A stretch of 64,000 bases of DNA from Macrostomum hystrix (GCA_950097015.1 CATNEN010000012.1:3753632-3817631), one strand, 5' to 3'. Shown: positions 9,455-64,000, counted from the first letter of the stretch. The notes: generated from the letters alone by a model not told the origin. Numbers and translations: made by a program.

Positions 9455-10913
9455 CATACATGCGCAACCTCCCAAATTTACACCGGCCGTGCCACTTCGT
9501 TTTTAAAAAAAAATGCGACATACCTATGCCCAAATTTTTTTTATCTGGGTAAACGGCAGGGGAAACTATGACTGTGTTGCAATAGTAGCCCGTAAAATGT
9601 TTATGCACTGTAATAAATCTGATTGCGACTTACTTCCCTCTGAATGCGACTTACTTCCCTCTGATTGCGACTTACTTACCTTGGAATGCGACTTACTTCC
9701 CTCTGAATGCGACTTACTTCCCTCTGATTGCGACTTACTTACCTTGGAATGCGACTTACTTCCCTCTGATTGCGACTTACTTCCCTCTGATTGCGACTTA
9801 CTTCCCTCTGAATGCGACTTACTTCCCTCTGAATGCGACTTACTTCCCTCTGAATGCGACTTACTTCCCTCTGATTGCGACTTACTTCCCTCTTAATGCG
9901 ACTTACTTCCCTCTGAATGCGACTTACTTCCCCCTGAATGCGACTTACTTCCCTCTGATTGCGACTTACTTCCCTCTGAATGCGACTTACTTCCCTCTGA
10001 ATGCGACTTACTTCCCTCTGAATGCGACTTACTTCCCCCTGAATGTGACTTACTTCCCTCTGATTGCGACTTACTTCCCCCTGAATGTGACTTACTTCCC
10101 CCTGAATGTGACTTACTTCCCCCTGAATGTGACTTACTTCCCTCTGAATGCGACTTACTTCCCTCTGAATGTGACTTACTTCCCTCTGAATGTGACTTAC
10201 TTCCCCCTGAATGCGACTTACTTCCCTCTGATTGCGACTTACTTCCCTCTGAATGCGACTTACTTCCCTCTGAATGCAACTTACTTCCCTCTGAATGCGA
10301 CTTACTTCCCCCTGAATGTGACTTACTTCCCTCTGATTGCGACTTACTTCCCCCTGAATGTGACTTACTTCCCCCTGAATGTGACTTACTTCCCTCTGAA
10401 TGCGACTTACTTCCCTCTGAATGTGACTTACTTCCCTCTGAATGTGACTTACTTCCCTCTGATTGCGACTTACTTCCCTCTGATTGCGACTTACTTCCCT
10501 CTGAATGCGACTTACTTCCCTCTGAATGCGACTTACTTCCCTCTGATTGCGACTTACTTCCCTCTGATTGCGACTTACTTCCCTCTGATTGCGACTTAGC
10601 CCCCTCTGATTGCGACTTACTTCCCTCTGATTGCGACTTACTTACCTCTGAATGCAACTTACTTCCCTTGGAATGCGACTAAGTTGCCTCTGATTGCAGA
10701 TTTTGTCACGTTTTTGCTTCTTTCCCCATTTGCTTTCCTTCGTTTCTTCTTTCCTTTCTCTGCTTTCCTCATTTTCCTGCCTTCTTTTCTTTTTTTCCGC
10801 TCGTTTTTTTCTGTCCGATTTTTTTCTCGGGTGGCCATTTTTGCGACTTACCTTGCTCGGCCGCTCGTCACCCAGCCGGATCGGCCGGGTCGGCCGGGTG
10901 TTGCGCATGTATG
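9455..10913. mobile_element. hAT-like MITE, long copy (1459 bp) with internal minisatellite
   Basis: TIR CATACATGCGCAAC/GTTGCGCATGTATG; perfect 8-bp TSD CTTTGTCA (9447-9454, 10914-10921); subterminal sequences shared with 8035-8282. Confidence 0.88.
9618..10700. repeat. 21-bp minisatellite inside the MITE
   Basis: Unit gaatgcgacttacttccctct, about 50 copies. Confidence 0.97.
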
Positions 10914-40425: not shown

Positions 40426-42779
40426 TCAGCAGGTGCTGGCTCCGGCAGACACAGCCAGTCGCGGCTCGAACACAATCCGATGCTCCAGTGGAGCCCGAAT
40501 GCCGCCGCCGTGGCTGGACACCCGGCCGAGCAGTTCGTCCAGGCCGCGCGTCTCGGCCGGATCCAGCCGCAGCTTGAAGCGCTGCATCAGGCCGGTGAAG
40601 AACAGGAATAGCTCCATCCTGGCGAGACTCTCGCCCAGGCACGCCCGCTTGCCTAAGCCGAAGGACACCACGAATTCGCTTGGCGAGAATCGCCCGCTAG
40701 CCGGGTCCAGGTGACGCTCCGGACGGAAGCTGTCGGGCTCAGGGAACAGGTCGGAGCTGTGGTGGATGTTGTAGACATTGTAGGCCACTGCTGAGCCAGC
40801 AGGCAGGCGATAGCCGCTGACTGTGGTCTCCTCAGTGGAGCTGTGCATCACACCCAGCGGTGCCAGGCAGGCGAGTCGCTGCACCTCCTCCAGGGTGGCC
40901 ATTGTGTAGTGCAGCGCAGCTTTGTCCTTTGTGCTGACTGGCCGCTCCGTGCCGATTTGGGCCTGGATCTCCTGAAGAACAGTTTAGAGGCGGGTGATGG
41001 TACACTTGTCTTGTCACTCTAGTCTCCCTGGAACTGTTTGGTCTGTCACTCTAATCTCTCAGGAACTGTTTGGTCTGTCACTCCAGTCTCCCTGGAACTG
41101 TTTGGTCTGTCACTCCAGTCTCCCTGGAACTGTTTGGTCTGTCACTCCAGTCTCCCTGGAACTGTTTGGTCTGTCACTCCAGTCTCCCTGGAACTGTTTG
41201 GTCTGTCACTCCAGTCTCCCTGGAACTGTTTGGTCTGTCACTCCAGTCTCCCTGGAACTGTTTGGTCTGTCACTCCAGTCTCCCTGGAACTGTTTGGTCT
41301 GTCACTCCAGTCTCCCTGGAACTGTTTGGTCTGTCACTCCAGTCTCCCTGGAACTGTTTGGTCTGTCACTCTAATCTCTCAGGAACTGTTTGGTCTGTCA
41401 CTCCAGTCTCCCTGGAACTGTTTGGTCTGTCACTCCAGTCTCCCTGGAACTGTTTGGTCTGTCACTCCAGTCTCCCTGGAACTGTTTGGTCTGTCACTCC
41501 AGTCTCCCTGGAACTGTTTGGTCTGTCACTCCAGTCTCCCTGGAACTGTTTGGTCTGTCACTCCAGTCTCCCTGGAACTGTTTGGTCTGTCACTCCAGTC
41601 TCCCTGGAACTGTTTGGTCTGTCACTCCAGTCTCCCTGAAACTGTTTGGTCTGTCACTCCAGTCTCCCTGGAACTGTTTGGTCTGTCACTCCAGTCTCTC
41701 AGGAACTGTTTGATCTGTCACTCTAGTCTCTCAGGAACTGTTTGATCTGTCACTCTAGTCTCTCAGGAACTGTTTGGTCTGTCACTCCAGTCTCTTAGGA
41801 ACTGTTTGGTCTGTCACTCCAGTCTCTCAGGAACTGTTTGGTCTGTCACTCTAGTCTCTCAGGAACTGTTTGGCCTTTTCACTCCAGTCTCTCAGGAACT
41901 ATTTGGTCTGTCACTCCAATCTGTCAGGAACTATTTTGTCTGTTACTCCAGTCTCTCAGGAACTATTTGGTCTGTCACTCCAATCTGTCAGGAACTATTT
42001 TGTCTGTCACTCCAATCTGTCAGGAACTGTTTGGTCTGTCACTCCAATCTGTCAGGAACTATTTTGTCTGTTACTCCAGTCTCTCAGGAACTATTTTGTC
42101 TGTCACTCCAATCTGTCAGGAACTGTTTGGTCTGTCACTCCAATCTGTCAGGAACTATTTTGTCTGTTACTCCAGTCTCTCAGGAACTATTTGGTCTGTC
42201 ACTCCAATCTGTCAGGAACTATTTTGTCTGTCACTCCAATCTGTCAGGAACTGTTTGGTCTATCACTCTAGTCTCTCAGTAACTTTTTTGGTCTGTCACT
42301 CCAATCTCCCAGAAGTCAGAACCCAGGCTAACGCTGGCAGCCACCATTTTCTTCGCAGCCACTCTCTGTACTGTACCTGGAAGACCCTCTCAGCAACGTC
42401 CGGATTGCGCAACATCATCAGCACGGCCCAGCGCAGCGTATGCGATGTGGTATCTGTGCCGGCCAGAAACAGGTCGGCAACGGCCAGCGTGAGCCTGGCG
42501 TGGTTGAACTTGTCCGGATGGCTAGCCTGGTGCCGCAGGTGGGCTTCGATATAGTCGCGCGGCTGCTGGGCGACGTCGCCATCGAGCTGCATCTCCGCCC
42601 GGTGCTGGTCGGCCTGTTTGGCGCAGAAGGCGAACAGCTCGCCGAACAGATCCAGTCGGCTGCGCCGGAGCCACAGAGCCAGGCGGGCCAGTGGGCGAAG
42701 CGCCTGTCAAATCAGTGAAGGTTGGACGTCAGGGTGTCCAATGCAATTAGCCGGTTGCTGAAATATTTGATAAGGGCCC

Positions 42780-46984: not shown

Positions 46985-49205
46985 GCTCGCTCCTCTCTTC
47001 CTTCCGCTCCTCTCTTCCTTCCTCTCCTCTCTTCCTTCCGCTCCTCTCTTCCTTCCGCTCCTCTCTTCCTTCCTCTCCTCTCTTCCTTCCTCTCCTCTCT
47101 TCCTTCCGCTCCTCTCTTCCTTCCTCTCCTCTCTTCCTTCCGCTCCTCTCTTCCTTCCGCTCCTCTCTTACTTCCTCTCCTCTCTTCCTTCCTCTCCTCT
47201 CTTCCTTCCTCTCCTCTCTTCCTTCCGCTCCTCTCTTGCTTCCTCTCCTCTCTTCCTTCCTCTCCTCTCTTCCTTCCTCTCCTCTCTTCCTTCCTCTCCT
47301 CTCTTCCTCTTATCCCGCTCCTCTATCCCCCTATCCCGCTCCTCTATTCCACCTATCCCGCTCCTCTATCCTCCTTATCCCGCTCCTCTATTCCACCTAT
47401 CCCGCTCCTCTATTCCACCTATCCCGCTCCTCTATCCTCCTTATCCCGCTCCTCTATTCCTCCTATCCCGCTCCTCTATCCCCCTATCCCGCTCCTCTAT
47501 CCCCCCTATCCCGCTCCTCTATTCCTCCTATCCCGCTCCTCTATTCCTCCTATCCCACTCCTCTATCCCCCCTATCCCGCTCCTCTATTCCACCTATCCC
47601 GCTCCTCTATCCCCCCTATCCCGCTCCTCTATTCCACCTATCCCGCTCCTCTATCCCCCCTATCCCGCTCCTCTATTCCTCCTATCCCGCTCCTCTATCC
47701 CCCTATCCCGCTCCTCTATTCCACCTATCCCGCTCCTCTATTCCACCTATCCCGCTCCTCTATTCCTCCTATCCCGCTCCTCTATCCCCCTATCCCGCTC
47801 CTCTATCCCCCTATCCCGCTCCTCTATTCCTCCTATCCCGCTCCTCTATTCCTCCTATCCCACTCCTCTATCCTCCCTATCCCGCTCCTCTATTCCTCCT
47901 ATCCCGCTCCTCTATTCCTCCTATCCCACTCCTCTATTCCTCCTATCCCGCTCCTCTATTCCTCCTATCCCGCTCCTCTATTCCTCCTATCCCGCTCCTC
48001 TATTCCTCCTATCCCGCTCCTCTATTCCTCCTATCCCACTCCTCTATCCTCCCTATCCCGCTCCTCTATTCCTCCTATCCCGCTCCTCTATTCCTCCTAT
48101 CCCACTCCTCTATTCCTCCTATCCCGCTCCTCTATTCCTCCTATCCCGCTCCTCTATTCCTCCTATCCCACTCCTCTATTCCTCCTATCCCGCTCCTCTA
48201 TTCCTCCTATCCCGCTCCTCTATTCCTCCTATCCCGCTCCTCTATTCCTCCTATCCCGCTCCTCTATTCCTCCTATCCCGCTCCTCTATTCCACCTATCC
48301 CGCTCCTCTATTCCTCCTATCCCGCTCCTCTATTCCTCCTATCCCGCTCCTCTATCCCCCTATCCCGCTCCTCTATCCCCCCTATCCCGCTCCTCTATTT
48401 CTCCTATCCCGCTCCTCTATCCCCCTATCCCGCTCCTCTATCCCCCCTATCCCGCTCCTCTATTTCTCCTATCCCGCTCCTCTATTCCACCTATCCCGCT
48501 CCTCTATTCCTCCTATCCCGCTCCTCTATTCCTCCTATCCCGCTCCTCTATTCCTCCTATCCCGCTCCTCTATTCCTCCTATCCCGCTCCTCTATTCCAC
48601 CTATCCCGCTCCTCTATTCCTCCTATCCCGCTCCTCTATTCCTCCTATCCCACTCCTCTATCCCCCCTATCCCGCTCCTCTATTCCTCCTATCCCACTCC
48701 TCTATTCCTCCTATCCCGCTCCTCTATTCCTCCTATCCCGCTCCTCTATTCCTCCTATCCCGCTCCTCTATTCCTCCTATCCCACTCCTCTATTCCACCT
48801 ATCCCGCTCCTCTATCCCCCCTATCCCGCTCCTCTATTCCTCCTATCCCACTCCTCTATTCCTCCTATCCCGCTCCTCTATTCCTCCTATCCCGCTCCTC
48901 TATTCCTCCTATCCCACTCCTCTATCCCCCCTATCCCGCTCCTCTATTCCACCTATCCCGCTCCTCTATCCCCCCTATCCCGCTCCTCTATTCCTCCTAT
49001 CCCGCTCCTCTATCCCCCTATCCCGCTCCTCTATCCCCCCTATCCCGCTCCTCTATTTCTCCTATCCCGCTCCTCTATTCCACCTATCCCGCTCCTCTAT
49101 TCCTCCTATCCCGCTCCTCTATTCCTCCTATCCCACTCCTCTATCCCCCCTATCCCGCTCCTCTATTCCACCTATCCCGCTCCTCTATTCCTCCTATCCC
49201 GCTCC
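46985..49205. repeat. Adjacent 17-bp and 22-bp polypyrimidine minisatellites
   Basis: cctctcctctcttcctt (46985-47310), then ctcctatcccgctcctctattc (47311-49205; period 22). Confidence 0.95.
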
Positions 49206-50123
49206 TCATTGCCATCCTCTTTCTCTCCATGTCTCCTTCCCGCTTTTCTAGCCCTCTGTTTCGCTCTTGTTTTGCTTTCATCGTCTTTACTCGCATCTCA
49301 TCCGCATCTCCGTCTCTGCTTTCAGTAACGACTGAGTCAATGCCCCCCTTCCAGATATAATTGACGGTGTAGAAATTGCATTTACAGTACAATTAGCTCT
49401 CTAATAGAGATAAAACTGCACCTCTTCGATTTGTTATTTGTATGATTGTTGTACATTAAGCAAGTGAGCATCTAAAATGAGATTTTCCTCCTCAATACTG
49501 AATTGTGGCCCCTCTGTCCCTCTCTTTGTTAGTAAAACAGAGCTACTAACACAAAAGAAACTTCTGATGAGAGGCTTAAAGTAGGCATTGTGAAATGAGC
49601 TTGCAGGGTAAGACAATAAAACACAGTAGCTAACGATAGAGTACAATTGAATGCGTCTACGAGTTATATAGCAGCTGTAAGAAATTCATTGTGCAGCATT
49701 TGGAGAATTGCATTTAATTCGTTAAGATTTTTGTTGATAATTTTTTTTTCATCATTAGTCCAACTTTTTTAGAGCTAGGCGAGTTCACTTTTAGAGAACG
49801 TGAGTGCAACTACTATAGATAGGAAAATTTACCTGCTAAGAAAGCTATTGTTATCGTGTGACAATTTTCATGGCTATAATATTAATAGCAATAATATTTG
49901 CACCAGATGAGAGGCTCATTATTTGATGACAGTAGATCCACAGCCAGCGAGAGGCAATTCTGCCCATTTCTCTGATCTCTGGGTTCCGGCAATCACACTC
50001 GAGATTCTAGGAATCTCGGTGAACAAGTCGAACGCGTTGCAGCTTCGCCAATCACACCCCAGTCAGAGGGGGGTCGGTGGCAGAGCGGTTATCGCGTTTG
50101 CCTCTCGCACAACGGTCCCGAAG

Positions 50124-50408
50124 GGGGTCGTTTCACAAACCCTAATTTTCACAACGTCGCAAGACACACTTTCATAAGCCCTAAATTTCACAAACCCTAA
50201 TTTTCTCAACGTCGAAAAGCCGTGCACAGAATTTCACAACGTCGAAAACTAAAGTTGCTTCCGACTTCACAAGCCCTAAATTTCACAAGCCCTTAATTTC
50301 ACAAGCCCTAAATTTCACAAGACCTAATTTTCACAAGACATAATTTTCACAACGTCGAAAAGCCATGCACAGAAACTTCAGAAAATTAGGGTTTGTGAAA
50401 GCGACCCC
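50124..50408. mobile_element. MITE-like element with ~28-bp TIRs and internal 16-bp repeats
   Basis: ggggtcgtttcacaaaccctaattttc vs gaaaattagggtttgtgaaagcgacccc (one indel); internal tttcacaagccctaaa repeats; directly follows a SINE head (50067-50122); no TSD seen. Confidence 0.7.
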
Positions 50409-50627
50409 TGTGAAAGATTCTATCTCCATAGTGCTTTTAGGCGTTGTGAAATTTAGGGCTTGTCAAATTTAGGTGTTGTGAAATCTGTGGCATTGCTTAT
50501 TTTCGACGTTGTGAAATTTAGGGCTTACTAGCAAGTTTTGCCCCCCTTCGGGGAGCAGAAATATTTTGATTTCGTCCAGTATACACTTTTTAGCAGCTGC
50601 ATTTTCAGCCTTTTTACGCTACAATGA

Positions 50628-51600
50628 TCAGTTGACAATGATCCCCCAGTTGATAAAGATCCCCCAGTTGACAATAATCCCCCAGTTGACAATGATCCCC
50701 CAGTTGACAATGATCCCCCCGTTGACAATAATCCCCCAATTGATGATGATCACGCAGTTGATTATGATCCCCCAGTTGACAATAATCCCTCAATTGATGA
50801 TGATCACGCAGTTGACAATGATCCCCCAGTTAATGATGACTCCCCATTGATGATGATCCCCAGTTGACAATGTTAACACAGCTGACAATGATCCCCGAAT
50901 TGACAATAATCCCCCAATTGATGATGATCACGCAGTTGACAATGATCCCCCAGTTAATGATGACTCCCCATTGATGATAATCTCCAGTTGACAACGTTCC
51001 CCCAGTTGACAATGTTCCCACAGTTGACAATGATCCCCCAGTTGATGATGATCAACAAGTTGACAATGATCCCCCCAGTTCACAATGATCCTCCGGGTGA
51101 TGATAAACCCCCAGTTGACAATGATCCCCAGTTGACAATGATCCCCCAGTTGACATTGACAATGATCTCCCAGTTGACAATGATCCCCCAGTTGACAATT
51201 ATCCCCCAGTTAACCATGATCCCGCATTTGATGATGACTCCCCAGTTGACAATTATCCCCCAGTTGACAACTATCCCCCCGTTGACAATGATCCTCCAGT
51301 TGACCATGATCCCCCAGTTGACGATTATCCCCCAGTCGACAATTATCTCTCAGTTGACTATGATCCCCCATTGATGGTGATCCCAGTTGACAATGTTCCC
51401 CCAGTTGAACATGATCCCCTAGTTGACAATGATCCCCTAGTTGATTATGATCCCGCATTTGGTGATGTTTCCCCGTGACAATTATCCCCCAGTTGACAAT
51501 TATCCCCCAGTTGCCAATGATCCTCCAGTTGACAATGATCCCCCAGTTGACAATTATCCCACAGTTTACCATGATCCCCCAGTTGACGATTATCCACCAG
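50628..51600. repeat. 18-bp satellite array (unit 1)
   Basis: gttgacaatgatccccca, more degenerate than the other two arrays. Confidence 0.95.
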
Positions 51601-51611
51601 TTCTGGTTTAG

Positions 51612-54600
51612 CAATGATTCAAACGCTGGGTTAGCCATGATTCAAACTCTGGTTTTGCCATGATTCAAACTCTGGTTTAGCCATGATTCAGAATCTAGTT
51701 TAGCCATGATTCAGACGCTGGTTTAGCTATGATTCAAACTCTGGTTTAGCCATGATTCAGACGCTGGTTTAGCTATGATTTAAACTCTGGTTTAGCCATG
51801 ATTCAGACTCTGGTGTAGCCATGATTCAGACTCTGGTTTAGCCATGATTCAGACTCTGGTTTAGCCATGATTCAGACTCTGGTTTAGCTATGAGCCATGA
51901 TTCAGACTCTGGTGTAGCCATGATTCAGACTCTGGTTTAGCCATGATTCAGACTCTGGTTTAGCCATGATTCAGACTCTGGTTTAGCTATGAGCCATGAT
52001 TCAGACTCTGGTGTAGCCATGAATCAGACTCTGGTTTAGCCATGATTCAAACTCTGGTTTAGCTATGATTTAAACTCTGGTGTAGCCATGATTCAGACTC
52101 TGGTTTAGCTATGATTCAAACTCTGGTTTAGCCATGATTCAGACTCTGGTTTAGCTATGATTCAGACTCTGGTTTAGCCATGATTCAGACTCTGGTGTAG
52201 CCATGATTCAGACTCTGGTTTAGCCATGATTCAAACTCTGGTTAAGCCATGATTCAGACTCTGGTTTAGCCATGATTCAGACTCTGGTTTAGCTATGATT
52301 CAAACTCTGGTTTAGCCATCATTCAAGCTCTGGTTTAGACATGATTCAAACTCTGGTTAGCCATGATTGAAACTCAATTTTAGCTATTATTCAATCGCTG
52401 GTTTAGCAATGATTCGAACTCTGGTTTAGCAATGATTCGAACTCTGGTTTAGCAATGATTCAAACTCTGGTTTAGCAATGATTCAGACTCTGGTTTAGCC
52501 ATGATTCAGACTCCAGTTTAGCCATGATTCAAGCTCTGGTTTAGCCATGTTTCAGACTCTAGTTTCGCCTTGATTCAAATTTAGCCATGATTCAGACTCT
52601 AGGTTAGCCATGATTCAAACGTTGGTTTAGCCATGATTCAAACTCTGGTTTAGCCCTGATTCAAACTCTGGTTTAGCCATGATTCAGACGCTGTGATGAT
52701 TTAAAGTCTGCTTTAGCCATGATTCAAACTCTGTTTTAGCCATGATTTAAACTCTGGTGTAGCCATGATTCAAACTCTGGTTTCGCCTTGATTCAAATTT
52801 AGCCATGATTCAGACTCTAGGTTAGCCATGATTCAAACGTTGGTTTAGCCATGATTCAAACTCTGGTTTAGCCCTGATTCAAACTCTGGTTTAGCCATGA
52901 TTCAGACGCTGTGATGATTTAAAGTCTGCTTTAGCCATGATTCAAACTCTGTTTTAGCCATGATTTAAACTCTGGTGTAGCCATGATTCAAACTCTGGTT
53001 TCGCCTTGATTCAAATTTAGCCATGATTCAGACTCTAGGTTAACCATGATTCAGACTCTGGTTTAGCCATGATTCAAACTCTGGTTTAGCCATGATTCAA
53101 ACTCTGGTTTAGCCATGATTCAGACTCTGGTTTAGCCATGATTCAAACTCTGGTTTAGCAATGATTCAGACTCTGGTTTAGCCATGATTCAGACTCCAGT
53201 TTTGCCATGATTCAGACTCTGGTTTAGCCATGATTCAAACACTGGTTTAGCCATCATTCAAGCTCTGGTTTAGACATGATTCAAACTCTGGTTTAGCCGT
53301 GATTCAAACTCTGGTTTAGCCATGATTCAAACGCTGGTTTAGAATGATTCAAACTCTGGTTTAGCCATGATTCAAACTCTTGTTTAGCAATGATTCAGAC
53401 TCTGGTTTAGCCATGATTCAGACTCCAGTTTAGCCATGATTCAAGCTCTGGTTTAGCCATGATTCAAACTCTGGTTTAGCAATGATTCAGACTCTGGTTT
53501 AGCCATGATTCAGACTCCAGTTTTGCCATGATTCAGACTCTGATTTAGCCATGATTCAAACTCTGGTTTGGCCATGATTCAAACTCTGGTTAAGCCATGA
53601 TTCAAACTCTGGTTAAGCCATGATTCAGACTCTGGTTTAGCCATGATTCAAACTATGCTTTAGCCATGATTCAAACACTGGTTTAGCCATCATTCAAGCT
53701 CTGGTTTAGACATGATTCAAACTCTGGTTTAGCCGTGATTCAAACTCTGGTTTAGCCATGATTCAAACGCTGGTTTAGAATGATTCAAACTCTGGTTTAG
53801 CCATGATTCAAAATCTGGTTTAGCAATGATTCAGACTCTGGTTTAGCCATGATTGAAACTCAATTTTAGCTATTATTCAATCGCTGGTTTAGCAATGATT
53901 CGAACTCTGGTTTAGCAATGATTCGAACTCTGGTTTAGCCGTGATTCAAACTCTGGTTTAGCCATGATTCAAACGATGGTTTAGACCTGATTCAAACTCT
54001 GGTTTGCCATGATTCAAAATCTGGTTTAGCAATGATTCAGACTCCAGTTTAGCCATGATTCAAGCTCTGGTTTAGCCATGTTTCAGACTCTAGTTTCACC
54101 TTGATTCAAATTTAGCCATGATTCAGACTCTAGGTTAGCCATGATTCAAACGTTGGTTTAGCCATGATTCAAACTCTGGTTTAGCCATGATTCAAACTCT
54201 GGTTTAGCCATGATTCAGACGCTGTGATGATTTAAAGTCTGCTTTAGCCATGATTCAAACTCTGTTTTAGCCATGATTTAAACTCTGGTGTAGCCATGAT
54301 TCAAACTCTGGTTTCGCCTTGATTCAAATTTAGCCATGATTCAGACTCTAGGTTAACCATGATTCAGACTCTGGTTTAGCCATGATTCAAACTCTGGTTT
54401 AGCCATGATTCAAACTCTGGTTTAGCCATGATTCAGACTCTGGTTTAGCCATGATTCAAACTCTGGTTTAGCAATGATTCAGACTCTGGTTTAGCCATGA
54501 TTCAGACTCCAGTTTTGCCATGATTCAGACTCTGGTTTAGCCATGATTCAAACACTGGTTTAGCCATCATTCAAGCTCTGGTTTAGACATGATTCAAACT

Positions 54601-56705
54601 CTGGTTTAGCCGTGATTCAAACTCTGGTTTAGCCATGATTCAAACGCTGGTTTAGAATGATTCAAACTCTGGTTTAGCCATGATTCAAACTCTTGTTTAG
54701 CAATGATTCAGACTCTGGTTTAGCCATGATTCAGACTCCAGTTTAGCCATGATTCAAGCTCTGGTTTAGCCATGATTCAAACTCTGGTTTAGCAATGATT
54801 CAGACTCTGGTTTAGCCATGATTCAGACTCCAGTTTTGCCATGATTCAGACTCTGATTTAGCCATGATTCAAACTCTGGTTTGGCCATGATTCAAACTCT
54901 GGTTAAGCCATGATTCAAACTCTGGTTAAGCCATGATTCAGACTCTGGTTTAGCCATGATTCAAACTATGCTTTAGCCATGATTCAAACACTGGTTTAGC
55001 CATCATTCAAGCTCTGGTTTAGACATGATTCAAACTCTGGTTTAGCCGTGATTCAAACTCTGGTTTAGCCATGATTCAAACGCTGGTTTAGAATGATTCA
55101 AACTCTGGTTTAGCCATGATTCAAACTCTTGTTTAGCAATGATTCAGACTCTGGTTTAGCCATGATTCAGACTCCAGTTTAGCCATGATTCAAGCTCTGG
55201 TTTAGCCATGATTCAAACTCTGGTTTAGCAATGATTCAGACTCTGGTTTAGCCATGATTCAGACTCCAGTTTAGCCATGATTCAAGCTCTGGTTTAGCCA
55301 TGATTCAAACTCTGGTTTAGCCATGATTCAGACTATGGTTTAGCCATGATTCAGACTCTAGGTTAGCCATGATTCAAACGTTGGTTTAGCCATGATTCAG
55401 ACTCTGGTTTAGCCATGATTTAAATTCTGGTTTAGCCATGATTCAGACTCTGGTTTAGCCATGATTCAAACTCTGGTTAAGCCATGATTCAGACTCTGGT
55501 TTAGCCATGATTCAAACTCTGGTTTAGCCATGATTCAGACGCTGGTTTAGCCATGATTCAGACTCTGGTTTAGCCATGATTCAGACTCTGGTTAAGCCAT
55601 GATTCAGACTCTGGTTTAGCCATGATTTAAATTCTGGTTAAGCCATGATTCAGACTCTGGTTTAGCCATGATTCAAACTCTAGTTAAGCCATGATTCAGA
55701 CTCTGGTTTAGCCATGATTCAAACTCTGCTTTAGCCATGATTCAAACTCTAGTTAAGCCATGATTCAGACTCTGGTTTAGCCATGATTCAGACTCTGGTT
55801 TAGCCATGATTCAAACTCTGCTTTAGCCATGATTCAAACTCTAGTTAAGCCATGATTCAGACTCTGGTTTAGCCATGATTCAAACTCTGCTTTAGCCATG
55901 ATTCAGACGCTGGTTTAGCCATGATTCAAGCTCTATTTTTGCCATGATTCAAATTCAGGTTTGCTATGATTTATGATATTTTATTTACGAAATGAAAAAA
56001 ATAAATCAAAATAATCTTCAATCACTACTGGCTGAAAATTAGTCTAAATAATTTGACGCAGTGCAGAATCGAACCCTAGCCTAGCCTAACTTATTCCTAG
56101 TGCCTAACACATCGGCTATTCCGACTGTTGGTTAGTGGGTGCAGAAATCAGCCTTATAAAATGAATTCTCAAAGTTCTGGCTTTGTACAATGAAGTAAGA
56201 AAATAGAGTAAATAGAGAAGCCATGATTCAGACTCTGGTTTAGCCATGATTTAAATTCTGGTTAAGCCATGATTCAGACTCTGGTTTAGCCATGATTCAA
56301 ACTCTAGTTAAGCCATGATTCAGACTCTGGTTTAGCCATGATTCAAACTCTGCTTTAGCCATGATTCAGACGCTGGTTTAGCCATGATTCAAACTCTGGT
56401 TTAGCCATGATTCAAACTCTGGTTAAGCCATGATTCAGACTCTGGTTTAGCCATGATTCAAACTCTGGTTTAGCCATGATTCAAACTCTGGTTTAGCCAT
56501 GATTCAAACTCTGGTTTAGCCATGATTCAAACTCTGGTTTAGCCATGATTCAAACTCTGGTTTAGCCGTGATTCAAACTCTGGTTTAGCCATGATTCAAA
56601 CTCTGGTTTAGCCATGATTCAAACTCTGGTTTAGCCATGATTCAGACGCTGGTTTAGCCATGATTCAAGCTCTATTTTTGCCATGATTCAAATTCAGGTT
56701 TGCTA
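51612..56705. repeat. 23-bp satellite array (unit 1), interrupted by a spacer module at ~55965-56220
   Basis: atgattcaaactctggtttagcc; period 23. Confidence 0.97.
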
Positions 56706-57437
56706 TGATTTATGATATTTTATTTACGAAATGAAAAAAATAAATCAAAATAATCTTCAATCACTACTGGCTGAAAATTAGTCTAAATAATTTGACGCAG
56801 TGCAGAATCGAACCCTAGCCTAGCCTAACTTATTCCTAGTGCCTACACATCGGCTATTCCGACTGTTGGTTAGTGGGTGCAGAAATCAGCCTTATAAAAT
56901 GAATTCTCAAAGTTCTGGCTTTGTACAATGAAGTAAGAAAATAGAGTACACTCAGTCTCGCGGTTGGTTGTGTACATTTATTTCCAATTTGTCTCCAGAG
57001 TGCAGGCTTCAAATTCAATCAGCTAGGGGTTGTTGCGCAATTTGACGATGCAATTCTAATTCAGTGGCAGTGAGTGGTTTGACCTTTGAAAAATCATGTT
57101 TTTCGAATATTTAATCCCTTTAGCAATAAAGTTAAGCTTAATAAAAATACGTGTATAATTGTCCCCATATTTGGCATCTTTTGGTGAAGAAATGGTGAAA
57201 ATCGGTTGAGCCGTTCGGGAGAAAATCAATTACAAGCAACCAAGCAAGCAACCAACCAACCATTTCATTTTTAGTATATTTATAAGTTAAGCTTAATAAA
57301 AATACGTGTATAATTGTCCCCATATTTGGCATCTTTTGGTGAAGAAATGGTGAAAATCGGTTGAGCCGTTCGGGAGAAAATCAATTACAAGCAACCAAGC
57401 AAGCAACCAACCAACCATTTCATTTTTAGTATATTTA

Positions 57438-57770
57438 CTAGCTGCCTTCGCTACCCTCTGGGTAGCCTCCCTGTGAGTTCTTATCAGTACGCGCGTGCGT
57501 TATCAAAACTGGCTCTGATGCAATCATTAAAATTGGCACTGAAGGCCTCACTGTGCACAAGCTGTAAACAAGAATGCATTAGAAAAGCCTATTTAAAACT
57601 GTTTTTCGAATATTTAATCCCCTTGCCAATGGAATTAAGCTTAATAAAATTACGTGTACCGATTCCGGCCCATTTGTGATCTTTTGGCGAAGGAATTGTG
57701 AAAATCGGTTGAGCCGTTCGGGAGCTAGTCGATTGCAAGCAAGCAAGATTTTCATTTTTAGTATATTAGA
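57438..57770 (-). mobile_element. Short Helitron-like element, family B, copy 1 (333 bp)
   Basis: 5' TCTAATATACT..., 3' hairpin GCTACCC-AGA-GGGTAGC, 8 nt, CTAG. Confidence 0.75.
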
Positions 57771-57814
57771 AGATTACAAGCAACCAACCAACCATTTCAT
57801 TTTTAGTATATTTA

Positions 57815-58141
57815 CTAGCTGCCTTCGCTACCCTCTGGGTAGCCTCGCTTGAGTTCTTATCAGTTCGTTATCAAAACTGGCTCTGATGCAATCATTAAAA
57901 TTGGCACTGGAGCCTCACTGCGCACAAGCTGAAAACAAGAATGCATTAGAAAAGCCTATTTAAAACAGTTTTTCGAATATTTAATCCCCTTGGCAATGGA
58001 ATTAAGCTTAATAAAAATACGTGTATATGTGTCCCCATATTTGGCATCTTTTGGTGAAGAAATGGTGAAAATCGGTTGAGCCGTTCGGGAGAAAATCAAT
58101 TACAAGCAAGCAAGCAAGATTTTCATTTTTAGTATATTAGA
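57815..58141 (-). mobile_element. Short Helitron-like element, family B, copy 2 (327 bp)
   Basis: Same termini as 57438-57770; its 5' TC abuts the CTAG of unit 2. Confidence 0.75.
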
Positions 58142-58235
58142 CTAGCAAGTTTTGCCCCCCTTCGGGGAGCAGAAATACTTTTAATTCGTCTAGTACATAC
58201 TTTTTAGCAGCTGAATTTACAGCTTTTTAAAGCTA

Positions 58236-61070
58236 CAATGAACCCCCAGTTGACAATGATCCCCCAGTTGACAATGATCCCCCCGTTGATGATGATCTCC
58301 TAGTTGATGATGATACCCCAGTTGACAATGATCCCCCAGTTGACAATGATCCCCCAGTTGACAATGATCCCCCAGTTGATGATGATCCCCCGTTGATGAT
58401 GATCTCCCAGTTGACAATGATCCCCCAGTTGACAATGATCCCCCAGTTGACAATGATCCCCCCGTTGATGATGATCTCCCAGTTGATGATGATACCCCAG
58501 TTGACAATGATCCCCCAGTTGACAATGATCCCCCAGTTGACAATGATCCTCCAGTTGATGATGATCCCCCGTTGATGATGATCTCCCAGTTGACAATGAT
58601 CCCGCCCGTTGACAATGATCCCACAGTTGACAATGAACCCCCAGTTGACAATGATCCCCCAGTTCATGATGACCCTCAGTTGACAATGATCCCCCAGTTG
58701 ACAATGATCCCCCAGTTCACAATGATCCCCCAGTTGATGATGATCCCCCAGTTGATGATGATCCCCCAGTTGATGATGATCCCCCAGTTGATGATGATCA
58801 CCCAGTTGACAATGATCCCCCAGTTGACAATGATCCCCCCGTTGATGATGATCTCCCAGTTGATGATGATACCCCTGTTGACAATGATCCCCCAGTTCAT
58901 GATGACCCTCAGTTGACAATGATCCCCCAGTTGACAATGATCCCACAGTTGACAATGATCCCCCAGTTGACAAAGATCCCCCAGTTCACAATGATCCACC
59001 AGTTAACAAAGATCCCCCAGTTCACAATGATCCCCTAGTTGATGAAGTCTCCCCATTGATGATGATCCCCAGTTAACAATGTTCCTCCAGTTGACAATGT
59101 TCCCCCAGTTGACAATGATCCCCCAGTTGATGATGATCACCCAGTTGACAATGATCCCCCAGTTGACAATGATCCCCCAGTTGACAATGATCCCCCAGTT
59201 GACAATGATCCCGCCGGTTGACAATGATCCCACAGTTGACAATGAACCCCCAGTTGACAATGATCCCCCAGTTGATGATGATCCCCCAGTTGACAATGAT
59301 CCCCCAGTTGATGATGATGCCCCAGTTGACAATGAACCCCCAGTTGACAAAGATCACCCAGTTGATGATGATCCCCCAGTTGATGATGATCACCCAGTTG
59401 ACAATGATCCCCCAGTTGACAATGATCCCCCCGTTGATGATGATCTCCCAGTTGATGATGATACCCCAGTTGACAATGATCCCCCAGTTGACAATGATCA
59501 CCCAGTTGACAATGATCCCCCAGTTGACAATGATCCCCCCGTTGATGATGATCTCCCAGTTGATGATGATACCCCTGTTGACAATGATCCCCCAGTTCAT
59601 GATGACCCTCAGTTGACAATGATCCCCCAGTTGACAATGATCCCACAGTTGACAATGATCCCCCAGTTGACAAAGATCCCCCAGTTCACAATGATCCACC
59701 AGTTAACAAAGATCCCCCAGTTCACAATGATCCCCTAGTTGATGAAGTCTCCCCATTGATGATGATCCCCAGTTAACAATGTTCCTCCAGTTGACAATGT
59801 TCCCCCAGTTGACAATGATCCCCCAGTTGATGATGATCACCCAGTTGACAATGATCCCCCAGTTGACAATGATCCCCCAGTTGACAATGATCCCCCAGTT
59901 GACAATGATCCCGCCGGTTGACAATGATCCCACAGTTGACAATGAACCCCCAGTTGACAATGATCCCCCAGTTGACAATGATCCCGCCGGTTGACAATGA
60001 TCCCACAGTTGACAATGAACCCCCAGTTGACAATGATCCCCCAGTTGATGATGATCCCCCAGTTGACAATGATCCCCCAGTTGATGATGATGTCCCAGTT
60101 GACAATGAACCCCCAGTTGACAAAGATCACCCAGTTGATGATGATCCCCCAGTTGAAGATGATCACCCAGTTGACAATGATCCCCCAGTTGACAATGATC
60201 CCCCCGTTGATGATGATCTCCCAGTTGATGATGATACCCCAGTTGACAATGATCCCCCAGTTGACAATGATCCCCCAGTTGACAATGATCCCCCAGTTGA
60301 TGATGATCCCCCGTTGATGATGATCTCCCAGTTGACAATGATCCCCCAGTTGACAATGATCCCCCAGTTGACAATGAACCCCCAGTTGACAACGATCCCC
60401 CAGTTGACAATGATCCCCCATTTGACAATGATCCCCCAGTTGACAATGATCCCCCAGTTGATGATGATCTCCCAGTTGATAATGATCCCACAGTTGACAA
60501 TGATCCCCCAGTTGACAATGATCCCCCAGTTGACAATGATCCCCCAGTTGACAATGATCCCCCAGTTGACAATGATCCCCCAGTTGACAATGATCCCCTA
60601 GTTGATGAAGTCTCCCCATTGATGATGATCCCCAGTTAACAATGTTCCTCCAGTTGACAATGTTCCCCCAGTTGATAATGATCCCCCAGTTGATGATGAT
60701 CACCCAGTTGACAATGATCCCCCAGTTGACAATGATCCCCCAGTTGACAATGATCCCCCAGTTGACAATGATCCCGCCGGTTGACAATGATCCCACAGTT
60801 GACAATGAACCCCCAGTTGACAATGATCCCCCAGTTGATGATGATCCCCCAGTTGACAATGATCCCCCAGTTGATGATGATGCCCCAGTTGACAATGAAC
60901 CCCCAGTTGACAAAGATCACCCAGTTGATGATGATCCCCCAGTTGATGATGATCACCCAGTTGACAATGATCCCCAAGTTGACCATGATCCCCCATTTGA
61001 TGATGATTCCCCAGTTGACAATTATACCCCAGTTTACCATGATCCCCATTTTGATGATGACTCCTCAGTT
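58236..61070. repeat. 18-bp satellite array (unit 2)
   Basis: gttgacaatgatccccca with higher-order duplications. Confidence 0.97.
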
Positions 61071-61089
61071 GACGTTGATTTTTCAAACG

Positions 61090-61925
61090 CTGGGTAAGCC
61101 AAGATTCAAACTCAGATTTCGCCATGTTTTAAACCCTGGTGGGCTATGATTCAAACTCTCGTTTTGCCATGATTCAAACTCTGGTTTAGCCATGATTCAG
61201 ACTCCGGTTGACTATGATTCAAACTCTGGTTTTGCCATGATTCAAACGCTGGTTTAGCCATGATTCAAACTCTGGTTTAGCCATGATTTAAGCTCTGGTT
61301 TAGCCATGATTCAAGCTCTGGTTTAGCCATGATTCAAGCTCTGGTTTAGCCATGATTCAAACTCTGGTTTAGCCATGATTCACACTCCGGTTGACTATGA
61401 TTCAAACTCTGGTTTTGCCATGATTTAAACTCTGGATTAGCCATGATTCAAACTCTGGTTTAGCCATGATTTAAGCTCTGGTTTAGCCATGATTCAAACT
61501 CTGGTTTAGCCATGATTCAAGCTCTGGTTTAGCCATGATTCAGACTCTGGTTTAGCCATGATTCAAACTATGCTTTAGCCATGATTCAAACTCTGGTTTA
61601 GACATGATTCAAACTCTGGTTTAGCCGTGATTCAAACTCTGGTTTAGCCATGATTCAAACGCTGGTTTAGAATGATTCAAACTCTGGTTTAGCCATGATT
61701 CAAACTCTTGTTTAGCAATGATTCAGACTCTGGTTTAGCCATGATTCAGACTCCAGTTTAGCCATGATTCAAACTCTTGTTTAGCCATGATTCAAACTCT
61801 GGTTTAGCCATGGTTCAAACTCTGGTTTAGCCATGATTCAGACTCTGGTTTAGCCATGATTCAGACTCTAGTTTAGCCATGATTCAGACTCTATTTTTGC
61901 AATGATTCAAACTCAGGTGTGCTAT
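61090..61925. repeat. 23-bp satellite array (unit 2)
   Basis: atgattcaaactctggtttagcc. Confidence 0.96.
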
Positions 61926-62617
61926 GATTTATGATATTTTATTTACGAAATGAAAAAAATAAATTAAAATAGTCTTCAATCACTACTGGCTGAAAATTAT
62001 TCTAAAATGATTTGACGCAGTGCAGAATCGAACCCTAGCCTAGCCTATAACCTATTCCTAGTGCCTACACATCGGCTATTCCGACTGTTGGTTAGTGGGT
62101 GCAAAAATCAGCCTTATAAAATGATTTCTCAAAGTTCTGGCTTTGTACAATGAAGTGAGAAAATAGAGTACACTCAGTCTCGCGGTTGGTTGTGTACATT
62201 TATTTCCAATTTGTCTCCAGAGTGCAGGCTTCAAATTCAATCAGCTAGGGGTTGTTGCGCAATTTGACGATGCAATTCTAATTCAGTGGCAGTGAGCAAA
62301 ATTCTTAATAGGCCAAGATGGTTTGACCTTTAAAAAATCTGGTTTTTCGAATATTTAATCCCCTTAGCAATAAAGTAAGGCTTAATAAAAATACGTGTAT
62401 AATTGTCCCTATATTTGGCATCTTTTGGTGAAGAAATGGTGAAAATCGGTTGAGCCGTTCGGGAGAAAATCAATTACAAGCAACCAAGCAACCAAGCAAC
62501 CATTTCATTTTTAGTATAGTGGACTAGCAAGTTTTGCCCCCCTTCGGGGAGCAGAAATACTTTTAATTCGTCTAGTATATACTTTTTAGCAGCTGAATTT
62601 ACAGCTTTTTAAAGCTA

Positions 62618-63145
62618 CAATGAACCCCCAGTTGACAATGATCCCCCAGTTGACAATGATCCCCCAGTTGACAATGAACCCCCAGTTAACAATGAACCCC
62701 CAGTTGACAACGATCCCCCAGTTGACAATGATCCCCCATTTGACAATGATCCCCCAGTTGACAATGATCCCACAGTTGACAATGATCCCCCAGTTGACAA
62801 AGATCCCCCAGTTGACAATGATCCCCCAGTTGACAATGATCCCCCAGTTGACAATGATCCCCCAGTTGACAATGATCCCCCAGTTGATGATGATCCCCCA
62901 GTTGACAATGATCCCCCAGTTGAGAATGATCCCCCAGTTGACAATGATCCCCCAGTTGACAATGATCCCCCATTTGACAATGATCCCCCAGTTGACAATG
63001 ATCCCCCAGTTGACAATGATCCCCCAGTTGACAATGATCCCCCAGTTGACAATGATCCCCCAGTCGACAATTATCCCCCAGTTTACCATGATCCCCCAGT
63101 TCACCATGATCCCCATTTTGATGATGACTCCCCAGTTGACGTTGA
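62618..63145. repeat. 18-bp satellite array (unit 3)
   Basis: gttgacaatgatccccca. Confidence 0.96.
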
Positions 63146-63149
63146 TTTT

Positions 63150-64000
63150 TCAAACGCTGGGTTAGCCAAGATTCAAACTCAGGTTTCGCCATGTTTTAAA
63201 CCCTGGTGGGCTATGATTCAAACTCTCGTTTTGCCATGATTCAGACTCTGGTTTAGCCAAGATTCAAACTCTGGTTGGCTATGATTCAAACTCTGGTTTA
63301 GCCATGATTCAAGCGCTGGGTTAGCCATGATTGAAACTTGGTTTTTGCCATGATTCAAACTCTGGTTTAGCCATGATTCAAACGCTGGGTTAGCCATGAT
63401 TGAAACTCTGGTTTAGCCAAGATTCAAACTCTGGTTGGCTATGATTCAAAGTCTGGTTTAGCCATGATTCAAACTCTGGTTTAGCCATGATTCAGACTCT
63501 GGTTTAGCCATGATTCAAACTCTGGTGTAGCCATTATTCAAACTCTGGTTTAGCCATGATTCAAACTCTAGTTTAGCCATGCTGATGATGATGGTTTAGC
63601 CATGATTCAAACTCTAGTTTAGCCATGCTGATGATGATGGTTTAGCCATGATTTAGTCTCTGGTATAGCCATGATTCAGACGCTGGTTTAGCCATGATTC
63701 AAACTCTGGTGTAGCCAATATTCAAACTCTGGTTTAGCCATGATTCAAACTCTGGTTTAGCCATGATTCAGACTCTGATTTAGCCATGATTCAGACGCTG
63801 GTTTAGCCATGATTGAAACTCTGGTTTAGCCATGATTCAGACTCTGGTTTAGCCATGATTCAGACTCTGGTTAAGCCATGATTCAGACTCTGGTTTAGCC
63901 ATGATTCAAACTCTGCTTTAGCCATGACTCAAACTCTGGTTTAGCCATGATTCGGACTCTGGTTTAGCCATGATTCAAACTCTGCTTTAGCCATGATTCA
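63150..64000. repeat. 23-bp satellite array (unit 3)
   Basis: atgattcaaactctggtttagcc; continues past the window edge. Confidence 0.96.

Follow-up and report, generated by a model that had tools for sequence, protein, structure and literature searches.

The window analyzed here is a stretch of 64,000 nucleotides from Macrostomum hystrix (GCA_950097015.1, CATNEN010000012.1:3753632-3817631; G000:C12:3753632-3817631 in the numbering used below), taken from a haploid eukaryotic assembly of 220 Mb in 42 contigs. Its final part, from 50528 to 64000, is occupied on the minus strand by a head-to-tail chain, in a single orientation, of non-autonomous canonical Helitrons. The chain is composed of one copy of a subfamily designated A1, two copies of a subfamily A2, two mini-Helitrons B of approximately 330 bp, and two 5' stubs, arranged in the order A2, A2, B, stub, B, stub, A1. 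Window position 64000 is also the end of contig C12, which cuts off unit 3 and the outer end of the chain. An initial annotation, made from the sequence of the window alone, had read the same block as a head-to-tail concatemer of three Helitron-like units, each carrying two satellite arrays.

In family A, to which the three large units belong, the 5' end spans about 180 nt and includes a tetranucleotide microsatellite. It is followed by a spacer of some 0.4 kb, then by the 23-bp array and the 18-bp array, and the element closes with a 3' module of roughly 100 nt whose terminus is the hairpin and CTAG. All chain features lie on the minus strand and are listed here by ascending coordinate, with the arrays delimited by Tandem Repeats Finder. 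Unit 1 (50528-57282; 6,755 bp), the non-autonomous Helitron of subfamily A1, consists of a 3' module at 50528-50628, an 18-mer array at 50629-51602, a 23-mer array at 51602-56710, a spacer from 56711 to ~57099, and a 5' module extending up to 57282. It is followed by a 155-bp stub (57283-57437), a tandem duplicate of the 5' terminal stretch of unit 1 with 100% identity, and both begin not with TC itself but with TAAATATAC, a variant of the TC start. The first mini-Helitron B (57438-57770; 333 bp) combines a 5' module of the family-A kind with another 3' end. Three added letters (TCT on the element strand) and a 41-nt 5'-terminal stub with a microsatellite then fill 57771-57814, and lead to the second B copy (57815-58141; 327 bp), whose 5' end exactly abuts the CTAG of unit 2.

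Unit 2 (58142-62523; 4,382 bp) is a complete non-autonomous Helitron of subfamily A2, with a 3' module at 58142-58240, an 18-mer array at 58235-61047, an 18-to-23 transition at 61048-61081, a 23-mer array at 61082-61929, a spacer from 61930 to ~62341, and a 5' module with a (CAAG/CAAC)n microsatellite reaching to 62523. Unit 3, likewise of subfamily A2, runs from 62524 to the contig end at 64000, and retains its 3' module (62524-62622), its 18-mer array (62617-63140), and 23-mer repeats from 63149 to 64000.

The family-A 3' end motif, CTAGCAAGTTTTGCCCCCCTTCGGGGAGCAG, starts at plus-strand positions 50528, 58142 and 62524, and in all three units the minus strand forms an 8-bp stem with a GAA loop, followed by 7 nt and CTAG. 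These hairpins had been recognized in the initial annotation, as had the exact CTAG|TC joints at 58141/58142 (TATATTAGA|CTAG on the plus strand) and 62523/62524 (TATAGTGGA|CTAG); both stand, together with the module order and array lengths then given. The family-B 3' end (CTAGCTGCC...) has a 7-bp stem, GCTACCC-AGA-GGGTAGC, then 8 nt and CTAG, and a scan of the whole window for further perfect hairpin-CTRR-T ends yielded nothing beyond the two B copies. The 5' terminal letters vary among the window members (TAAAT, TCTAA and TCCAC). At the host side, the target site of the 3'-most element (50517-50527, minus strand) reads TTTAGGGCTTA| on the plus strand and CTAG|TAAGCCCTAAA on the element strand. 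The chain is thus joined as TTTAGGGCTTA|CTAG, and a box resembling a Helitron 5' end lies 6 nt from the insertion point.

The description of the block as three copies of one unit with conserved transition zones holds for units 2 and 3, whose 3' modules are 99% identical and whose 18-to-23 transitions are alike, but not for unit 1, whose 3' module is only 87-88% identical to theirs and whose transition is unlike both. The segment 57283-58141, previously assigned to unit 1, holds instead the 155-bp duplicate, the two mini-Helitrons B, and the 41-nt stub. The 3' module of unit 1 is present at 100% identity at no fewer than 19 other loci, and unit 1 belongs to a separate young subfamily. The idea that it might be an old founder, with an age gradient along the chain, was dropped because of these identical copies. 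As to the origin of the spacer, ARAGORN gave no match to a tRNA, and Rfam gave only a sub-threshold match to a small nucleolar RNA.

A genome search with the family-A 3' terminus retrieved 534-549 copies, compared with 0 for a reversed control, and the terminus is therefore not a product of chance. Of 30 A2 copies sampled, 28 have the same 99-nt 3' module letter for letter, showing that the family is very young. TC starts are found in unit 2 (TCCACTATAC), in the second B copy (TCTAATATAC), and in an autonomous copy described below (TCGAATATAC). Among solo family-A copies, CTAG is followed by T in 70 of 72 (57/58 in a first sample and 13/14 in a second; read as A on the plus strand), and of eight solo copies, four have a host A directly before the TC and three have it after 3-7 added letters.

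The insertion itself is captured by an empty-site comparison (n=1), in which a copy lies inside the spacer of another copy as gcatcaaa|[Helitron]|tcatttagac, that is, caaa|[insert]|tcatttagac. At the same position, the intact spacers of the window read caaatcattttaga and caaattatttagac (at greater length, gcgtcaaatcattttaga and gcgtcaaattatttagac). The interrupted and intact spacers together therefore demonstrate insertion between A and T without target-site duplication. In a search for terminal or subterminal inverted repeats, comparison of the first 200 nt with the last 200 nt gave an inverted match of at most 9 nt, a length that shuffled sequences reach in 14% of trials. Two Helentron and HINE features are therefore lacking, as there are no subterminal inverted repeats and the target is A|T rather than TT. 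The elements are canonical Helitrons with A|T targets, as the initial annotation had proposed; every defining feature that could be tested agrees with this assignment.

An autonomous RepHel partner with the same termini, which the initial annotation had suggested looking for, is present in the assembly. The Helitron Rep domain matches at 67 places in the genome, one of which falls within an element at C1:16481616-16491856 (10,241 bp). This element, flanked as A|TC...CTAG|T, shares its first ~180 nt and last 69 nt with unit 2 at 94%. Its open reading frame pieces, searched separately with exons unjoined, match Helitron_like_N (1.5e-46), PIF1 in two pieces (3.9e-19 and 2.6e-34), and OB folds of the RPA type (REPA_OB_2, 3.8e-07); the Rep piece stops at an apparent splice site. 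No AP endonuclease match was found in the partner's 10 plus-strand open reading frame pieces, a search that does not extend to smaller exons. Judging from the shared ends, a RepHel Helitron with RPA and the same termini most likely mobilizes the non-autonomous copies, and with nearly identical copies and partner elements present, the system may still be active. The partner also carries a minisatellite of its own, with 28 copies of a 21-bp repeat directly after the 5' module (C1:16482328-16482919), which overlaps an open frame of 264 amino acids.

The view of the element as a vehicle for two satellites is borne out genome-wide. In 30 of 30 sampled copies, the 18-mer array directly follows the 3' module. 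Array lengths were taken from the window and from 1.5-kb samples of other copies, and in the 12 copies whose 18-mer array ends inside the sampled 1.5 kb, 11 proceed to the 23-mer array and 1 shows only the 18-to-23 transition. The transition of the unit-2 type occurs 208 times in the genome. Well-kept dimers number approximately 22,900 for the 18-mer and 25,700 for the 23-mer, and both minisatellites together occupy at least ~1 Mb. Per element, this amounts to some 40-50 well-kept monomers each of the 18-mer and the 23-mer, in keeping with arrays that reside within elements. The 18-mer array ranges from ~0.5 to 2.9 kb among copies whose 3' modules are identical, and array length therefore changes much faster than point mutations accumulate. 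The two minisatellites are thus the standard cargo of family A, which has spread them through the genome. Classical satellite DNA was rejected as an explanation, since all 30 sampled 18-mer arrays begin at a Helitron 3' module. A few 18-mer arrays have no canonical family-A 3' end at the stringency of the search, for example a long array at C1:7924309-7925708, which may be a variant or truncated copy.

Chains are common outside the window. In 40 of 100 listed family-A copies, and in 13 of 27 from a second, independently chosen sample, the 3' end exactly abuts a cognate 5' end (~45% overall); the 100 copies include about 31 separate chain loci. For family B, which has ~390 3' ends in the genome, 99 of 100 listed copies abut an A-type 5' end, through joints that are exact, that contain 3-5 added letters, or that have no TC. 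At many joints, including the one at 57771-57773 in the window, the 3-5 added letters echo the opening of the 5' end (AGA, TAGA, TTAGA, GGA or TGGA on the plus strand), and a few joints have no TC. Added letters are seen outside solo 5' ends as well. Stubs also precede full 5' ends directly at other loci; in addition to the window examples of 155 nt and 41 nt (57283-57437 and 57774-57814), many of 20-45 nt occur elsewhere.

The solo copies bear on the choice of insertion site. Non-redundant flanks were available for 58 solo family-A copies in the first sample and 14 in the second (n=72). These copies lie at A|T sites, with CTAAA(A)nT approximately 7 nt beyond. In the first sample, TAG occurs 5-10 nt from the junction in 45/58 flanks (mode 7) against a background of 8.7% (p=2e-36), and the second sample gives 10/14 (p=2e-8). 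Pooled, 55 of the 72 flanks (76%) have TAG, compared with a background of 8.7-9.6%, and the peak is sharp at 7-9 nt and flat elsewhere. When the flanks are anchored on TAG, the motif reads A-n-T-T-T-T-A-G, with the A 5 nt before TAG in 32 of 45. This is the family's own 5' end on the opposite strand, CATTTTTAG plus 9 nt, the 5' end having the layout TC-N7-CTAAAAATG.

Two other sources of this motif were considered. The solo flanks are mutually unrelated in sequence, and both of the two flanks tested are single-copy DNA; they were therefore rejected as 5' ends of other Helitron families. Carry-over of donor letters past CTAG was likewise rejected, as the 7-nt stretch varies freely among copies with 99-100% identity elsewhere. 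A third 3' end (CTAGAAGATAC...) provided no further family for comparison, with only 6 copies, all sharing one flank.

A control was available in a second family, G1, with 287 3' ends in the genome, which is linked to a second RepHel lineage. Two tandem autonomous copies of this lineage lie on contig C38 with a 6,424-bp period, joined as ...GGGCAAAAAAAGCTAG|TCTATATATATAAAAGTG.... On the opposite strand, the G1 5' end reads CACTTTTAT plus 9 nt, which is the family-A layout with T in place of G. Among 100 listed G1 copies, 24 lie directly against a G1-type 5' end and no more than 1 against an A-type end; conversely, G1-type ends adjoin 0 of 127 family-A copies. The solo flanks separate in the same manner. 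In the window of 5-10 nt, G1 flanks contain TAT in 68/75 (91%) and TAG in 10/75, while for family A the figures are 11/72 for TAT and 55/72 for TAG. In an AT-rich background, 9.6% of sites have TAG and 26.7% have TAT, and the two families differ from each other with Fisher p=3e-15 for TAG and 8e-22 for TAT. Between the two families, the box at the target thus changes in step with the 5' end of the element itself. The second lineage (C38:19325762-19335449) comprises at least two tandem copies with an intron-less frame of 1,840 amino acids, and its 5' region contains a 69-bp repeat present in different numbers from copy to copy, the match ends stepping by 69 nt.

Together, these observations point to a chain that was probably built from separately inserted non-autonomous Helitrons, landing serially on 5'-end-like targets, and that was later enlarged by block duplication. 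As for how the targets are chosen, the balance of evidence leans toward Helitron transposases that here recognize a family-specific box like their own 5' end, CTAAAAAT or ATAAAAGT, approximately 7-9 nt from the cut, such that chains self-assemble serially with no rolling-circle multimer. The transposase would read a target box that resembles the box of its own 5' terminus. On this view, no target would suit it better than the 5' end of a cognate copy already in place, and newcomers would stack exactly ahead of older copies, creating CTAG|TC joints. Unequal recombination would later copy whole blocks of the chain. Exact multi-element periods are indeed found elsewhere, namely 8,710 bp three times (C14:697580-718106) and 5,020 bp twice (C9:331016-341084), and a chain at C1:25816447-25848518 has spacings of 4902/4773/5078/4902/4773. 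Such higher-order periods imply that two or three elements were duplicated at once. That the box is read by the transposase itself, and the order of these events, are what we infer from the target and chain data.

Several other origins have to be weighed. The chain could be one rolling-circle concatemer, in which a Helitron circle failed to terminate and the resulting multimer inserted once. Helraiser circles have the exact CTAG-TC joint, the tandem arrays of bats and plants have been read in this way (PMC4778049, PMC5876387), and neighbors of equal length elsewhere in the genome (3421/3422 bp; 5,020 bp twice) are 98.1-99.5% identical. However, the window members are A1, B, B, A2 and A2 with stubs, with different 3' ends and 5' letters and with array lengths that differ several-fold, and B elements stand at A-type 5' ends in 99 of 100 listed cases through variable joints. 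A multimer would also leave the box at solo sites unexplained. Because two subfamilies and a second family with another 3' end are mixed in it, this chain is very improbable as a single concatemer; of the two origins that the initial annotation had offered for its joints, it is repeated insertion at the terminus that fits. It could be argued instead that growth occurred mainly by unequal crossing-over or replication slippage between adjacent copies, with only one or two true insertions. The exact two- and three-element block periods, the 100% identical duplicate at 57283-57437, and the 99% likeness of the 3' modules of units 2 and 3 are all consistent with this proposal, yet it needs a mixed chain already present as its start. 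Moreover, a variant in the 3' module of unit 2 is common to one copy on contig C13 and absent from unit 3, and the heterologous joints and the ~31 chain loci among 100 sampled copies require repeated landing on 5' ends. Crossing-over as the main source of the chain is therefore unlikely.

The flank motif might also reflect no family-specific box at all, but a general Helitron preference for AT-rich DNA, or eroded 5' ends of old Helitrons. Helraiser favors AT-rich DNA, most strongly on the side of its 3' end (PMC4778049), the solo flanks average 13 A/T of 17, and short 5' stubs do occur in the genome. A general preference would not, however, make the families differ as they do, with 76% TAG in family A and 91% TAT in G1 over the AT-rich background of 9.6% and 26.7%, nor would it produce a peak confined to 7-9 nt; and flanks that are dissimilar to each other, and single-copy in both tested cases, do not resemble eroded 5' ends. 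The probability of this explanation is accordingly low. Finally, the window stops where contig C12 does, within 23-mer repeats, and arrays of this kind are hard to assemble to their true length, which might suggest that misassembly produced the tandem units. Modules, joints and chains of the same kinds nevertheless recur within many large contigs, and the units carry subfamily-specific differences in their non-array modules, leaving an artefact extremely improbable.

Serial landing on a cognate box nonetheless has a number of points to answer. In true 5' ends, 9 nt separate the box from the terminus, compared with a distance to the insertion point of mostly 7 nt at solo sites, and one cleavage register cannot explain both spacings. 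The 3-5 added letters, or the absent TC, at many joints are not predicted by a simple landing model. The near-identical neighbors of equal length elsewhere in the genome could be rolling-circle multimers. The outer end of the chain is missing, as the contig stops inside an array. The family-A flanks were sampled from ~130 of ~540 copies in a single haploid assembly; the 100 listed G1 copies were counted by eye from a printed list, and a single tandem pair is all that connects the G1 3' end with the second RepHel lineage.

Comparison with known systems places family A among canonical Helitrons. As in Helibat and Helraiser, the termini are TC and CTAG, a hairpin lies approximately 7-8 nt before the end, insertion is at A|T without duplication, the partner encodes RepHel with an RPA-like gene, and the CTAG-TC joints are those of Helraiser circles; the target preference likewise peaks on the flank beside the 3' end, as it does for Helraiser (PMC4778049, PMC5876387). 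Yet while Helraiser shows plain AT-richness, the preference here is for a box that has a set position and is specific to the family (TTTAG or TTTAT, at ~7 nt), and unlike in canonical Helitrons, ~45% of copies are joined without a gap to a cognate 5' end and the non-autonomous copies carry two minisatellites. The AT-rich 3'-side preference of Helraiser (PMC4778049) may be a weaker form of box targeting.

Central tandem repeats and a 5' microsatellite are well described in Helentron-derived elements of oyster and fly and in Helitrons of Xenopus (PMC7492417, PMC8268682, PMC4067079, PMC12001565). The HINE elements, such as Drosophila DINE-1 and oyster Cg_HINE, are laid out like family A: a tetranucleotide microsatellite closes the 5' flank, the tandem repeats in the center vary in copy number, and the 3' flank has a palindrome. 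They too scatter satellite-like arrays (PMC7492417, PMC8268682, PMC4067079). Unlike HINE, family A has no subterminal inverted repeats and targets A|T, not TT; its partner has Rep, helicase and RPA, and no endonuclease match in the 10 plus-strand pieces searched. Its monomers, moreover, are of 18 and 23 bp, in two different arrays per element, in contrast to HINE monomers of ~160-180 bp. The resemblance to Lep1 of Lepidoptera raised in the initial annotation is one of layout only, in the shared 5' microsatellite.

Head-to-tail Helitron copies in bats and plants and the Helitron minisatellites of Xenopus (Heli2Xen) have been published, with rolling-circle replication as their usual explanation (PMC5876387, PMC12001565). 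The present chains differ from those arrays in mixing subfamilies and families, which suggests serial landing rather than multimers. Paramecium Helitrons at chromosome ends likewise show apparently sequence-specific integration in a fixed orientation, but their target is the telomeric repeat and they belong to a different clade, whereas the target here resembles the element's own 5' end (PMC13085455).

Family A is thus a new Helitron family of a known kind, with chains and satellite cargo already published in kind. A literature search found no description of a co-varying, family-specific target box for eukaryotic Helitrons, and the positioned box is the part that goes beyond what was found published. 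If the proposed targeting is correct, sequence that resembles a 5' end serves the transposase as a target, as in bacterial HUH transposons. In IS608 and IS91, the target is recognized in the same way as the cleavage site at the element's own end (work cited in PMC5876387), and insertion is oriented and without duplication. These elements provide the closest working analogy for the 5'-end-like box, as an analogy only; they are prokaryotic, have short, fixed tetra- or pentanucleotide targets and, in the case of IS608, have no helicase. While head-to-tail Helitron arrays are mostly taken as a rolling-circle footprint, the preference of A and G1 each for its own version of the box suggests a different and testable origin. 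Such targeting would also explain how Helitron chains build up and how non-autonomous families that share a 5' end come to be mixed, and it would explain how transposons seed new satellite blocks, of which the megabase or more of the two minisatellites would be an example.

The remainder of the window offers some further observations. The host flank of the chain, at 50170-50526, consists of 16-bp repeats (TTCACAAGCCCTAAAT), first direct and then inverted, each of which holds a box of the TTTAG type; this set may be another mobile element. Window positions 1-50000 contain at least 12 unrelated minisatellite arrays, for example a 44-mer at 658-1448, a 21-mer at 9618-10697, a 32-mer at 41012-42312, and a 22-mer at 47296-49207, with no perfect hairpin-CTRR Helitron end adjoining them. 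The window also shows a strong skew of C over G between 44 and 50 kb.

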